From: Macrostomum lignano | Lineage: Eukaryota | DNA length: 64,000 nt | Reading direction: 5' to 3' | Assembly (NCBI GenBank): GCA_002269645.1 | Contig: NIVC01001022.1 | Span: forward strand, 1-64,000 | Part shown: one piece after another, positions 691 to 13,700 of the stretch | Numbering within the stretch: position 1 is the stretch's first letter | Layout: every line of letters begins with the position of its first letter | Made by a program: the position numbers and the translations under genes | Notes under the pieces: generated by a model | Told to the model about the DNA's origin: nothing | Database searches by the model: none | Seen by the model: the letters and a program-made list of their open reading frames with translations, nothing else

Positions 691-739
691 GTTTGTTTTT
701 TCATTAATCGACAGCCACCTCGTCCCCAAACGTCTCCAG

Positions 740-3700
740 ACGCCCTTCAGCACGGTGCCCTACGCCATACTGAAGACATTCGACATGACAGTCGGCGAGC
801 TGGAGTTCGTCACGTACTTTGTTACGGCTGATTACGGCAGCTTTCAGACTGCCGTACAATGCGTCTTCACTGCCTTTGTAGTCATCATGCCGATTGCGCT
901 GATGAACTTGTTGGTGAGATTTTTCCCACTAATTTTAACATACTAAATAGAAAAAGTAGTGTGTTTATGTATTCAAGATGGAAAAAACGTTACTCCCTCA
1001 TCACACTGCAGATCGGCATTGCAGTCGGCGACATTGAAGGCATCACTCGCGATGCAGAGCTGCAACTGTTGGCTATAAAAGTACTGCACTGATTTTTATT
1101 TGGGAGGCTTTTTTACTTTTATTTCTACTGTTAGTAGACAGTGGCAGAGCTTTGTGCGATAAATGCATGTGCTAGTTGAATGCTTCGTCTAACAAGGTGT
1201 TATGGGATTGCTTAAGGAGTTTATAGAGAGCGAGATGTCAAGCTGATAGGGGCGCCATGAGTAGCTTGTAGATGCGACATGAGTAGCTTGTAGATGCGCC
1301 ATGAGTAGCTTGTAGATGCGCCATGAGTAGCTTATAGATGCGCCATGAGTAGCTTGTAGATGCGCCATGAGTAGCTAATAGATGCGCCATGAGTAGCTTA
1401 TAGATGCGCCATGAGTAGCTTATAGATGCGCCATGAGTAGCTGATAGGCGCCATGAGCAGCTTATAGAGCGCCATGAGTAGCTTATAGAAGCCCCATGAG
1501 TAGCTTATAGAGGCGCCATGAGAAGCTTATAGGGGCACTAAAATGATTGTGAAGGGGCTACAAGCAGAGCAAAGCCAATTACCAAACTCATCAATCAACC
1601 CGCGCACACCTGTCGCTCAGATCAATCTAATCTACGAGGTGGAGACCAACTGTCCCAGGTATTTCCAGCGCCGGTTCCACCGCTCCCACATGGAGGTCTA
1701 TCCCAACCGCACCTACACCGGACTCAAAGCCGTGTTCAGGGGCAGCTTTGAGAAAGATTATCGAGCTTACAAAACTGCTCAGAGAGCCGAGGGGAGCGGA
1801 GAGAAATCTGAGACTGGAGATGAAGGCCTGAGGGAGGCTGTGCAGCAACAGAGCCGCAGGTGAGGAATTGAAAACTTTTTCAGCTGGTTGGATTGCAGCA
1901 TGCTGGTTTATCAGTTTAGCTCAGTTCTTCATTCTTGAGGGATGCCTTCAGGTCTGGTCAGACTCATTCAGGTCTGCTTTCCCTTCCCCTCAGACTCATT
2001 CAGGTCTGCTTTCCCTTCCCCTCAGACTCATTCAGGTCTGCTTTCCCTTCCCTCAGACTCATTCAGGTCTGCTTTCCTTCACCTCAGACCCATTCAGGTC
2101 TGGTTTCCCTTCCCCTCAGATTCCTTCAGGTCTGGTTTCCCTTCCCCTCAGACTCATTCAGGTCTGCTTTCCCTTCCCCTCAGACCCATTCAGGTCTGGT
2201 TTCCCTTCCCCTCAGATTCCTTCAGGTCTGGTTTCCCTTCCCCTCAGACCCATTCAGGTCTGGTTTCCCTTCCCCTCAGATTCCTTCAGGTCTGGTTTCC
2301 CTTCCCCTCAGACCCATTCAGGTCTGGTTTCCCTTCCCCTCAGATTCCTTCAGGTCTGGTTTCCCTTCCCCTCAGACCCATTCAGGTCTGGTTTCCCTTC
2401 CCCTCAGATTCCTTCAGGTCTGCTTTCCCTTCCCCTCAGACCCATTCAGGTCTGCTTTCCCTTCCCCTCAGACCCATTCAGGTCTGGTTTCCCTTCCCAT
2501 CAGATCCGTTCAGGCCTGGTCTCCCTTCCCCTCAGATTCCTTCAGGTCTGGTTTCCCTTCCCCTCAGACCCATTCAGGTCTGGTTTCCCTTCCCATCAGA
2601 TCCGTTCAGGCCTGGTCTCCCTTCCCCTCAGATTCCTTCAGGTCTGGTTTCCCTTCCCTCAGACCCATTCAGGTCTGGTTTCCCTTCCCATCAGATCCGT
2701 TCAGGTCTGCTTTCCTTTCCTCTCAGATCCATTCAGGTCTGGTTTCCCTTCCTCTCAGATTCCTTCAGGTCTGGTTTCCCTTCCCTCAGATTCCTTCAGG
2801 TCTGGTTTCCCTTCCCCTCAGACCCATTCAGGTCTGGTTTCCCTTCCCCTCAGATTCCTTCAGGTCTGGTTTCCCTTCCCCTCAGACCCATTCAGGTCTG
2901 GTTTCCCTTCCCCTCAGATTCCTTCAGGTCTGGTTTCCCTTCCCCTCAGACCCATTCAGGTCTGGTTTCCCTTCCCCTCAGATTCCTTCAGGTCTGGTTT
3001 CCCTTCCCCTCAGACCCATTCAGGTCTGGTTTCCCTTCCCATCAGATCCGTTCAGGTCTGCTTTCCTTTCCCCTCAGATTCCTTCAGGTCTGGTTTCCCT
3101 TCCCCTCAGACCCATTCAGGTCTGGTTTCCCTTCCCCTCAGATTCCTTCAGGTCTGGTTTCCCTTCCCCTCAGACCCATTCAGGTCTGCTTTCCCTTCCC
3201 CTCAGATTCCTTCATGTCTGGTTTCCCTTCCCCTCAGACCCATTCAGGTCTGGTTTCCCTTCCCCTCAGACTCATTCAGGTCTGGTTTCCCTTCCCATCA
3301 GATCCGTTCAGGCCTGGTCTCCCTTCCCCTCAGATTCCTTCAGGTCTGGTTTCCCTTCCCCTCAGACCCATTCAGGTCTGGTTTCCCTTCCCATCAGATC
3401 CGTTCAGGTCTGCTTTCCTTTCCTCTCAGATCCATTCAGGTCTGGTTTCCCTTCCTCTCAGATTCCTTCAGGTCTGGTTTCCCTTCCCCTCAGATTCCTT
3501 CAGGTCTGGTTTCCCTTCCCTCAGATCCATTCAGGTCTGGTTTCCTTTCCTTTCAGATCCATTCAGGTCTGGTTTCCCTTCCTCTCAGATTCCTTCAGGT
3601 CTGGTTTCCCTTCCTCTCAGATTCCTTCAGATCTGGTTTCCATTAAACTCTTTTAACAAGCCATTCTTGGAGGTGCCTGAGGCAAACAGGCTTACCACAT

Positions 3701-10736: not shown

Positions 10737-13700
10737 TCAGGCATTGCGGATAAAGGCGTCCAACTTTGCTGTGAGATCTTTGACACTTGTTTCCAGCTCA
10801 GCGACTCTGAAATTGCAATTAGAATTGGAATTTGGTGAGCCTGTTTGCCTCAGGCACTTCCTAGAATGTCTGGTCAATAAAGCTGTAGATCGAAACCAGA
10901 CCTGAATGAATCTGAGAGGAAGGGAAACCAGACCTGAATGAATCTGAGGGGAAGGGAAAGCAGACCTGAATGAGTCTGGGGGGAAGGGAAACCAGACCTG
11001 AATGAGTCTCAGGGGAAGGGAAACCAGACCTGAATGGGTCTGAGGGGAAGGGAAACCAGACCTGAAGGAATCTGAGGGGAAGGGAAAGCAGACCTGAATG
11101 AGTCTGAGGGAAGGGAAACCAGACCTGAAGAAATCTGAGGGGAAGGGAAAGCAGACCTAAAGAAATCTGAGGGGAAGGGAAAGCAGACCTGAATGAGTCT
11201 GAGGGGAAGGGAAAGCAGACCTGAATGAGTCTGAGGGGAAGGGAAACCAGACCTGAATGAGTCTCAGGGGAAGGGAAAGTAGACCTGAATGAGTCTGAGG
11301 GGAAGGGAAACCAGACCTGAAGGAGTCTCAGGGGAAGGGAAAGCAGACCTTAATGGGTCTGAGGGGAAGGGAAACCAGACCTGAAGGAGTCTCAGGGGAA
11401 GGGAAACCAGACCTGAAGGAATCTGAGGGGAAGGGAAACCAGACCTGAATGAGTCTGAGGGGAAGGGAAAGCAGACCTGAATGAGTCTGAGGGGAAGGGA
11501 AAGCAGACCTGAATGAGTCTGAGGGAAGGGAAACCAGACCTGAATGAGTCTGAGGGGAAGGGAAAGCAGACCTGAATGAGTCTGAGGGGAAGGGAAACCA
11601 GACCTGAATGAGTCTGAGGGAAGGGAAAGCAGACCTGAATGAGTCTGAGGGGAAGGGAAAGCAGACCTTAATGGGTCTGAGGGGAAGGGAAACCAGACCT
11701 GAATGAGTCTGAGGGAAGGGAAACCAGACCTGAATGAGTCTGAGGGGAAGGGAAACCAGACCTTAATGGGTCTGAGGGGAAGGGAAACCAGACCTGAAGG
11801 AGTCTCAGGGGAAGGGAAACCAGACCTGAAGGAATCTGAGGGGAAGGGAAACCAGACCTGAAGAAAGCTGAGGAGAGTCAACCTAAACCTAACCAGACCT
11901 GAAGGCATCCCTCAAGAAGGATGAACTGAGCTAAACTGATAAACCAGCATGCTGCAATCCAACCAGCTGAAAAAGTTTTCAATTCCTCACCTGCGGCTCT
12001 GCTGCTGCACAGCTTCCTCCAGACCTTCATCTCCAGTCTCAGACTTCTCTCCGCTCCCCTCGGCTCTCTGAGCAGTCTTGTAAGCTCGATAATCTTTCTC
12101 AAAGCTGCCCCTGAACACGGCCTTGAGTCCGGTGTAGGTGCGGTTAGGATAGACCTCCATGTGGGAGCGGTGGAACCGGCGCTGGAAATACCTGGGACAG
12201 TTGGTCTCCACCTCGTAGATTAGATTGATCTGAGCGACAGGTGCGAGACGAGGTTTTCGTGCTAGTCAGCAGTCAATCGAAGTATTTGGAAAATATTTTC
12301 AAAATTCTCATGCCGATATATCTACAGTCTACGTGATGTCAATCGGCGCCAATCCTACAGTCCTCATGGCGCCAATCCTACAGTCCTCATGGCGCCAATC
12401 CTACAGTCCTCATGGCGCCAATCCTACAGTCCTCATGGCGCCAATCCTACAGTCCTCATGGCGCCAATCCTACAGTCCTCATGGCGCCAATCCTACAGTC
12501 CTCATGGCGCCAATCCTACAGTCCTCATGGCGCCAATCCTACAGTCCTCATGGCGCCAATCCTACAGTGCTCATGGCGCCAATCCTACAGTCCTCATGGC
12601 GCCAATCCTACAGTCCTCATGGCGCCAATCCTACAGTGCTCATGGCGCCAATCCTACAGTCCTCATGGCGCCAATCCTACAGTCCTCATGGCGCCAATCC
12701 TACAGTCCTCATGGCGCCAATCCTACAGTCCTCATGGCGCCAATCCTACAGTCCTCATGGCGCCAATCCTACAGTCCTCATGGCGCCAATCCTACAGTCC
12801 TCATGGCGCCAATCCTACAGTCCTCATGGCGCCAATCCTACAGTCCTCATGGCGCCAATCCTACAGTCCTCATGGCGCCAATCCTACAGTCCTCATGGCG
12901 CCAATCCTACAGTCCTCATGGCGCCAATCCTACAGTCTACGTGACGCCAACTTTGCTCTCTGGAGCGCACCACAGTGTAGTCCACTGAAAGCGAGAAGCG
13001 TTGAAAATAAAAAGTTATGAATTTTCCCAAATTCGCCATTTCGACTCACCCTTAATGCCAGCAGCTGTAGCTCGGCTTCTCGCGTGATGCCCTCGATGTC
13101 GCCAACAGCAATGCCAATCTGGGCAAGAGGAGGCAATATCGGATTTTGTTACGTTTATTTGTGACAAGCCTACATGTGAGTACATTTCACTCTGCCTATC
13201 GAAGCCATTGAAGAAACGCCAGAAAAACTCACCAACAAGTTCATCAGCGCAATCGGCATAATGATAACGAAGGCAACGAACAAGCATTGTACAGCAGTCT
13301 GGAATCTGCCATAGTCTGCCGATACAAAGTACGTGACGAATTCCAGCTCGCCGACTGTCATGTCGAATGCCTTCAGTATGGCGTAGGGCACCGTGCTGAA
13401 GGGCGTCTGAAGACGTTTGGGGACAAGGCGGCTGTCGATTAATTAAGAAACAAACCAATCAATTAACCAATCAATCAATCAATCAATCAATCAATCAATC
13501 AATCAATCAATCAATCAATCAATCAATCAATCAATCAACCAATCAACCAATCAGTCAATCAATCAATCAAGAAATCAGTCAATCAATCAATCAATCAATC
13601 AATCGATCAACCAATCAGTCAATCAATCAATCAACCAATCAGTCAATCAATTAATCAATTAACCAACCAACCAACCAATCAATCAATCAATCAATCAATC

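Follow-up and report, generated by a model that had tools for sequence, protein, structure and literature searches.

How can two neighbouring genes be nearly identical in some exons and saturated with silent changes in others? The question is raised by the first 64 kilobases (kb) of scaffold NIVC01001022.1 of Macrostomum lignano (assembly GCA_002269645.1), called the window here and meaning the whole stretch of 64,000 nucleotides (nt) that was analysed, which carries two TRPA1-like genes arranged convergently, tail to tail: copy A on the forward (+) strand and copy B on the reverse (-) strand. We propose that the pair arose by an old inverted duplication and would since have been homogenised repeatedly by DNA-level non-allelic gene conversion, limited by the homology that remains between the copies; comparing the sequences leads us to put the probability of this reading at roughly 0.8.

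Window 1-17597 is 100% identical to the first 17,597 bases of the scaffold. Because the window begins at the scaffold end, copy A is truncated and only its 3′ end lies within it. Gene B is complete (10737-29703, - strand, 25 exons). A first-pass annotation of this DNA had described the last four exons of the two genes as facing each other across a spacer of about 7 kb, and we reproduced all of the exon coordinates, with a stop-to-stop distance of 6,943 nt. These facing exons are exons 22-25 of 25 and the three introns between them are introns 22, 23 and 24; all four exons have AG/GT borders in both copies and their lengths (199, 69, 239 and 70 nt) are equal in A and B.

Divergence between the copies switches abruptly within this short region. 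In exon 22, the pore exon, 21 of 199 positions differ: 4 in nt 1-89, 17 in nt 90-171 and none in the last 28. The boundary that had been placed in the middle of this exon is therefore present, the first 89 nt being near-identical and then giving way to diverged sequence, but the divergence does not run on to the end of the exon, since the last 28 nt are identical again. This island of perfect identity (A 886-913, B 13260-13233; the IMPIALMNLL codons plus GTGAG) lies inside an otherwise saturated block, has a probability of about 0.001-0.01 given the local proportion of synonymous differences (pS), and could be due to micro-conversion or to splice-site constraint. In exon 23, which encodes the IGIAVGD motif, the previously counted 16 differences in 69 nt, almost all of them synonymous, were recovered (13 of the 16 changed codons are synonymous, and pS is 0.71), as was the failure of its flanking introns to align: introns 22 and 23 match only near the splice sites and over the last 14 nt of intron 23. 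Near-identity then returns in exon 24, where we count 9/239 differences as before, in the 5′ flank of intron 24 (96/98 identical), in the last 55 nt of that intron (4 differences) and in exon 25 (2/70), with similarity being lost about 15 nt past the stop. The amino-acid differences listed earlier for these exons (T/A, S/R, V/L and T/V) are all present, but they are four of a total of 12.

The same contrast appears in silent divergence, which had been predicted to be uneven and which is far from uniform. By the Nei-Gojobori method, codons 30-89 (the second half of the pore exon and the 69-nt exon) give a synonymous divergence (dS) of 0.99, a pS of 0.55 and a ratio of non-synonymous to synonymous divergence (dN/dS) of 0.07, and the other 131 codons give a dS of 0.12 and a dN/dS of 0.14. 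A two-breakpoint maximum chi-square search on third codon positions places the best segment at codons 36-89, a value that none of 1000 permutations reached, and by Fisher's test p is 0.002 inside the pore exon, 3e-6 for exon 23 vs exon 24 and 3e-8 for the block vs the rest.

For the remainder of copy A, upstream sequence was taken from scaffold NIVC01002734.1 (stretch L001), which encodes P0009, an ankyrin protein 88% identical to B, and was joined to the window; all 25 exons were thus compared, mapped exon by exon. L001 24102-24554 (453 nt) matches window 1-453, the first 325 nt identically and the rest differing only in the register of a TGAT array, and the resulting A model has 25 exons and 1,128 residues. 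UniProt model P0008 corresponds to copy A from pre-S1 through the 69-nt exon, with the A-type pore sequence exact.

Across the whole gene, pS per exon ranges from 0.00 to 0.98 (heterogeneity G = 306 with 22 degrees of freedom, p = 6e-52). Near-identical are exons 2 (0.00), 9 (0.07), 10 (0.05), 11 (0.13), 12 (0.00), 13 (0.11), 16 (0.14), 20 (0.06), 24 (0.14) and 25 (0.06); intermediate are exons 3 (0.40), 7 (0.29), 14 (0.43) and 22, the pore exon (0.27); and diverged are exons 4 (0.70), 5 (0.67), 6 (0.92), 8 (0.98), 15 (0.84), 17 (0.61), 18 (0.64), 19 (0.68), 21 (0.58) and 23 (0.71). At least six near-identical tracts (pS 0.00-0.14) are scattered in this way among diverged exons, and they make up about half of the coding sequence, the rest being saturated. 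At the protein level, exon 1 is 44% identical between A and B, and the parts that escaped homogenisation are 44-80% identical. The near-identical class has a pS of 0.073 and a proportion of non-synonymous differences (pN) of 0.011, the diverged class a pS of 0.70 and a pN of 0.13, values which therefore show long and strong purifying selection on both copies. The whole-gene comparison strengthens the earlier proposal of an old duplication homogenised in tracts by non-allelic conversion: the background is saturated, the tracts number at least six, and several of them include introns. We thus find two of the features by which gene conversion is recognised, namely significantly heterogeneous silent divergence, and tracts that extend into non-coding sequence and whose limits bear no relation to codon function.

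Non-coding sequence bears on another possible reading, that uneven selection at the nucleotide level (on splicing enhancers, RNA structure or codon bias) has kept some exons alike with no transfer of DNA. Identity does peak in exons, and in exons 9 and 16 it ends at or near the splice sites, as such selection might predict. However, introns align beside near-identical exons, and only there (introns 12, 13, 20 and 24 at 93-98%, with arrays in 2, 11, 19 and 21), while the remaining thirteen are unalignable; the introns thus show the same contrast as the exons, and silent-site selection is therefore not the cause. The tenfold gap in pS between neighbouring exons is also far beyond known constraint, and we find this explanation scarcely credible. 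Nor do the switches respect exon borders: exon 3 is diverged in its first 18 nt only, in exon 9 a diverged patch of 22 nt separates two identical runs, of 168 nt and 51 nt, and exon 22 contains the pore-exon switch described above.

The saturated background could be turned on its head by supposing that the duplication is young, with copies only about 4-7% diverged, and that the diverged blocks were imported by conversion from distant TRPA paralogues elsewhere in the genome. M. lignano does have further TRPA-like genes (P0002, for example, at 45% identity) and extra near-identical copies or homeologues, and the direction of transfer is unreadable from two sequences; when the distant paralogue P0002 was used to polarise the amino-acid differences, the states were mixed and pointed in no direction. 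Such a history would, however, require at least five separate imports (exons 1, 3-8, 14-15, 17-19 and 21-23), for which no candidate donor was found, together with a duplication breakpoint exactly at the gene end, because the 3′ flank is unalignable 15 nt past the stop. It also predicts two divergence classes where we find three. A further point against it comes from the arrays of intron 23, which are diverged and yet sit in the same position and have a common core; they are homologous, but each copy has homogenised its array on a unit of its own, which points to old divergence. A young duplication is accordingly very unlikely, and the undisturbed A/B divergence long predates the polyploidisation of M. 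lignano, which is recent (PMC10733133).

The neopolyploid genome, with its three homeologous subgenomes, is hard to assemble (PMC10733133), and so an artefact of assembly or polishing has to be weighed: chimeric contigs, collapsed repeats, or short reads mis-mapped between paralogues or homeologues could all produce patches of identity. The scaffold begins inside gene A and overlaps another scaffold, single-base frameshifts occur nearby (in a ferritin gene and in A exon 10/11), and exons 2 and 12 are suspiciously perfect. On the other side, private substitutions separate the copies in every tract with the exception of two exons, and polishing is unable to raise identity from 65-75% to 97%. The A-type pattern is, moreover, the same on two independently assembled scaffolds that have different introns: on a third scaffold, NIVC01001372.1 (L003, protein P0136), there is a copy A′ whose exons 2-23 are the same as those of A except for 1 nt, and whose introns differ. 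As the exons are identical to those of A, A′ speaks for reproducibility only and holds no phylogenetic signal. UniProt gene models also reproduce the junctions between diverged and near-identical sequence exactly, P0008 and P0004 in their A-type form and P0001 and P0003 in their B-type form. An artefact thus seems unlikely as an account of the mosaic.

What, then, would decide which exons are homogenised and which are left? Longer exons are the more similar (exon length vs pS, Spearman rho = -0.70, p = 2e-4), the median length being 168 nt for near-identical exons and 85.5 nt for diverged ones (Mann-Whitney p = 0.0016), and the short near-identical exons 12 and 25 sit in tracts that also cover the adjoining intron and a long exon. 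We infer from this that conversion may be limited by the homology remaining between the copies. In the mechanism we propose, a break in one copy would be repaired with the inverted neighbour as template, so that stretches were overwritten, several times over. Conversion would require good homology at both ends of a tract; heteroduplex formation or synthesis-dependent repair would begin and be resolved only where the copies have stayed similar, which between old paralogues would mean the longer exons. Gap repair anchored in two exons would copy the intervening intron, and short exons between non-homologous introns would not convert. GC content at third codon positions did not differ consistently between converted and unconverted parts, and so gives no usable signal of biased conversion.

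This has a bearing on the pore and S6 block, for which escape from conversion for functional reasons might be considered. The data give no reason to suppose protection by selection (the block has a dN/dS of 0.07). More simply, too little homology may have been on offer in the 69-nt exon, with its non-homologous flanking introns, and in the S6 half of the pore exon, so that both are still diverged.

Exons 9 and 16 sit less easily with conversion, and they are the best ground for a different template, namely a spliced transcript or cDNA of one copy that homogenised exon-confined islands (exons 9 and 16, possibly 3, 7 and 14) by RNA-templated repair. In these two exons identity is 95-97% and neither of the flanking introns can be aligned, exon 10/11 is near-identical where intron 9 is not, and the window contains a retroelement integrase open reading frame (ORF). 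Against a spliced template, identity reaches 13-24 nt into the introns upstream of exons 9, 22 and 24, whole introns lie inside several tracts, no intron has been lost, boundaries inside exons are common and the 3′ untranslated region is not homogenised; DNA-level conversion would in any case be needed for the other tracts. We consider RNA-templated repair highly improbable, though if true it would be a natural case of such repair between paralogues in a retroelement-rich flatworm.

Several points weigh against an old duplication with DNA-level conversion. Simple long-tract conversion does not predict exons 9 and 16, near-identical with both flanking introns unalignable (identity runs into the upstream intron for 13 nt at exon 9 and 0 nt at exon 16); they need either the homology-limit argument or separate events. 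Our comparison is of two copies within M. lignano, with one B locus, and a single scaffold built from PacBio data carries both the A-spacer-B join and the B mosaic. Where regions already resemble each other, polishing with short reads can remove their differences, and in exon 2 none of 88 synonymous sites differs, against about 5% in its intron flanks; this perfection could reflect a very recent event or a polishing artefact.

Some further indications come from the scaffolds and gene models of other copies. The start of NIVC01001022.1 overlaps the sequence near the end of NIVC01002734.1, and because the latter should extend to about window 13,430, at the TGAT array of copy B, the A-spacer-B region has probably been assembled twice. 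The C-terminal UniProt fragments show all four combinations of two amino-acid differences between A and B (in exons 24 and 25): R160 with M188 as in A (P0004), E160 with I188 as in B (P0001, P0005), R160 with I188 (P0006) and E160 with M188 (P0007). In P0003, a B-type pore, intron 22 and exon 23 are joined to R160. P0003 and these residue combinations fit exchange, in other copies, through intron 24 with its arrays, a weak hint because it comes from draft-assembly models and two sites only. A second B locus was not found by exact-product look-ups with P0001, P0003 and two exon-24 ORFs, and an exact 33-mer scan of metagenome and prokaryote genome contigs gave no match, as expected for an animal gene.

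We also observed a 1-nt frameshift in copy A exon 10/11 on NIVC01002734.1 (L001 ~14011, Afull 5011) relative to A′ on NIVC01001372.1, due either to an indel in the assembly or to a genuine lesion of one allele; the NCBI model PAA55583 (P0009) is out of frame from this point onward.

Judged by architecture and best match, A and B are TRPA1-family members. Among solved structures, the C-terminal 191 residues match TRPA1 only (Drosophila 7YKR at E = 4e-21, human at 4e-16), over an alignment that spans the pore helix, S6 and the TRP-like helix. The composite A protein is collinear, from residue 274 to 1059, with residues 258-1079 of Drosophila TRPA1 (7ykr, E = 4e-94), and 7ykr and 6v9v (Drosophila and human TRPA1) are the best PDB matches. 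Exon translations of copy B (- strand ORFs) contain the Pfam domains Ank, Ank_2 and Ank_4, and Ion_trans at E = 5e-9; the precomputed domains of P0009 and P0136, representing copy A, agree with ankyrin repeats. As in the TRPA1 channels of Drosophila (7YKR) and human (6V9V), there are N-terminal ankyrin repeats, six transmembrane segments and the pore/S6 motif LMNLLIGxAVGDI, with collinearity over about 790 residues. Unlike human TRPA1, the pair has Glu aligned with the Asp of the human filter, as read from the pore alignment, and is lineage-specific; all protein matches to the locus are from M. lignano. The last exon encodes VAELETSVKDLTAKLDAF, which looks helical. The C-terminal coiled coil of TRPA1 holds the tetramer together.

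Annotation of the locus is at present fragmentary, and some of its names are wrong. The C-terminal fragments P0001 and P0004-P0007 (UniProt A0A1I8HGV8 and others) are labelled ‘PRELI/MSF1 domain-containing protein’ or ‘Transposase’, names which do not fit. In UniProt model P0008 the acceptor lies 24 nt into the pore exon (739 instead of 715; in B 13407 vs 13431), so that HLVPKRLQ is skipped; both AG acceptors are conserved in A and B, and the alignment to TRPA1 structures favours the upstream one.

Among known systems, the closest in arrangement and behaviour is the human RHD/RHCE pair, inverted paralogues whose 3′ ends face each other with an unrelated gene between them, and in which exon-scale conversion in cis yields hybrid mosaic genes. 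Our pair is likewise inverted tail to tail around a spacer with an unrelated gene, with what would be exon-scale conversion. The RH genes differ in being far more similar overall and in having conversion documented in populations, whereas the TRPA1 pair has a saturated background, is seen in one haplotype and has introns full of tandem arrays. In human HBG1/HBG2 a conversion tract is bounded by a simple-sequence repeat in intron 2, and the pair described here resembles it in the sharp intragenic switch between near-identity and divergence and in the microsatellite beside the boundary, in our case a (TGAT)n array 24 nt upstream of the apparently converted half of the pore exon; the globin genes, however, are in tandem and have one tract, and the TRPA1 genes are inverted and have at least six. 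The ampliconic palindromes of the human Y chromosome are inverted repeats on one chromosome with arms more than 99.9% identical throughout, kept similar by intrachromosomal conversion. In the TRPA1 pair, near-identity covers only about half of the coding sequence and the smaller part of the intron sequence, and not the whole length of the arms; because the arms are mostly diverged, with islands of identity only, the pair is no palindrome of the kind found on the Y chromosome.

The process itself, gene conversion, is already known, and the locus would be a new and unusually clear instance of it which will not surprise a specialist. It does suggest that exon-intron architecture, rather than function, may decide which modules of a channel differentiate. 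For such genes, dating of duplications by dS and calling of orthologues will be badly misled, since dS in this one pair runs from 0 to saturation. In practice, paralogue-specific probes, RNA interference constructs and guides for CRISPR (clustered regularly interspaced short palindromic repeats) must target exons 4-6, 8, 15, 17-19, 21 or 23; reagents in exons 2, 9-13, 16, 20, 24 or 25 will strike both copies. We see its use in Macrostomum genomics and as a teaching-quality example of gene conversion in sensory-channel paralogues.

The coordinates of both copies, of the tracts between them and of their main arrays are collected in the table.

Table. Features of the convergent TRPA1-like pair, in window positions; copy B positions of exons and tracts descend because the gene is read on the - strand.
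Feature	Copy A (+)	Copy B (-)	Remarks
Exon 22 (pore exon)	715-913	13431-13233	pore helix, filter, first half of S6
Exon 23	1012-1080	13118-13050	IGIAVGDIEGI: end of S6 and start of TRP-like helix
Exon 24	1621-1859	12229-11991	
Exon 25 and stop	3724-3793	10806-10737	C-terminal helix; stop TGA in A
Exons 1-21		29703-14429	ankyrin repeats, pre-S1, S1-S5
Exon cores, part 1		29703-29488, 26497-26153, 24782-24678, 24588-24478, 24359-24270, 24177-24130, 22492-22367	
Exon cores, part 2		22283-22236, 20910-20629, 19858-19607, 19186-19076, 19003-18836, 17848-17768, 17640-17578	
Exon cores, part 3		17496-17347, 17017-16874, 15967-15923, 15824-15723, 15286-15122, 14548-14429	
Short high-identity tract	690-804	13455-13342	24 nt of intron and first 89 nt of pore exon; 6 differences
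Old diverged block (putative)	805-1606	13341-12244	second half of pore exon, intron 22, exon 23, intron 23
High-identity tract	1607-3808	12243-10722	starts 14 nt ahead of exon 24, ends 15 nt past the stop; takes in intron 24 and its 32-nt array
(TGAT)n microsatellite	115-689	13456-13941	24 nt upstream of pore exon
Intron 23 array	1241-1532	12345-12937	22-nt unit in A, 23-nt unit in B; common core GCGCCATGAG
Intron 24 array, 32-nt unit	1958-3641	10892-11862	52.8 copies in A, 30.5 in B
Spacer between the two stops			3794-10736, 6,943 nt; unique sequence, with a fibrinogen-C-domain gene on the - strand

Tandem arrays are a general feature of these genes, nearly every TRPA1 intron being filled with a different one (in copy B, for example, 19880-20620, 20960-21810, 24900-26100 and 28000-29400). 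The main unit variants of the intron 24 arrays are common to A and B, and the private variants and higher-order patterns differ. Several copy B intron arrays (14000-29500) are open in more than one frame over hundreds of codons, so that they could pass for genes. The intron that follows the 69-nt exon in copy A′ contains, in place of the 22-nt array, a 272-nt satellite (L003 22520-26630) of which at least 15 copies are reported to be 100% identical. A dispersed repeat of about 300 nt resembling a short interspersed nuclear element (SINE), 79-87% identical between copies, is found at 13942-14240, 23027-23323 and 49286-49508 and at L001 6567-6942, and one copy lies directly upstream of the copy B TGAT array. 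A match of about 84% between 61-115 and B 14104-14163 had been considered as a tract of intermediate age, and was dropped as its B part belongs to this SINE-like repeat, which has other copies in the window.

The neighbouring genes in the window include the fibrinogen C-terminal-domain gene of the spacer (~6603-7788, - strand), which has a signal peptide, is the NCBI protein PAA73226 (BOX15_Mlig009561g2) and is unrelated to TRPA1. An intronless ferritin gene (27110-27624, + strand) is nested on the opposite strand in copy B intron 1; a 1-nt shift at a G run (~27381-27383) disrupts its reading frame, leaving two Pfam halves in different frames, and this is either an assembly indel or the mark of a pseudogene. 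Beyond copy B there are an eIF4E ORF at 35235-35702 (- strand; Pfam IF4E, 1e-49) and, at 38108-39988 (+ strand), the 626-residue retroelement ORF with its rve integrase core domain.

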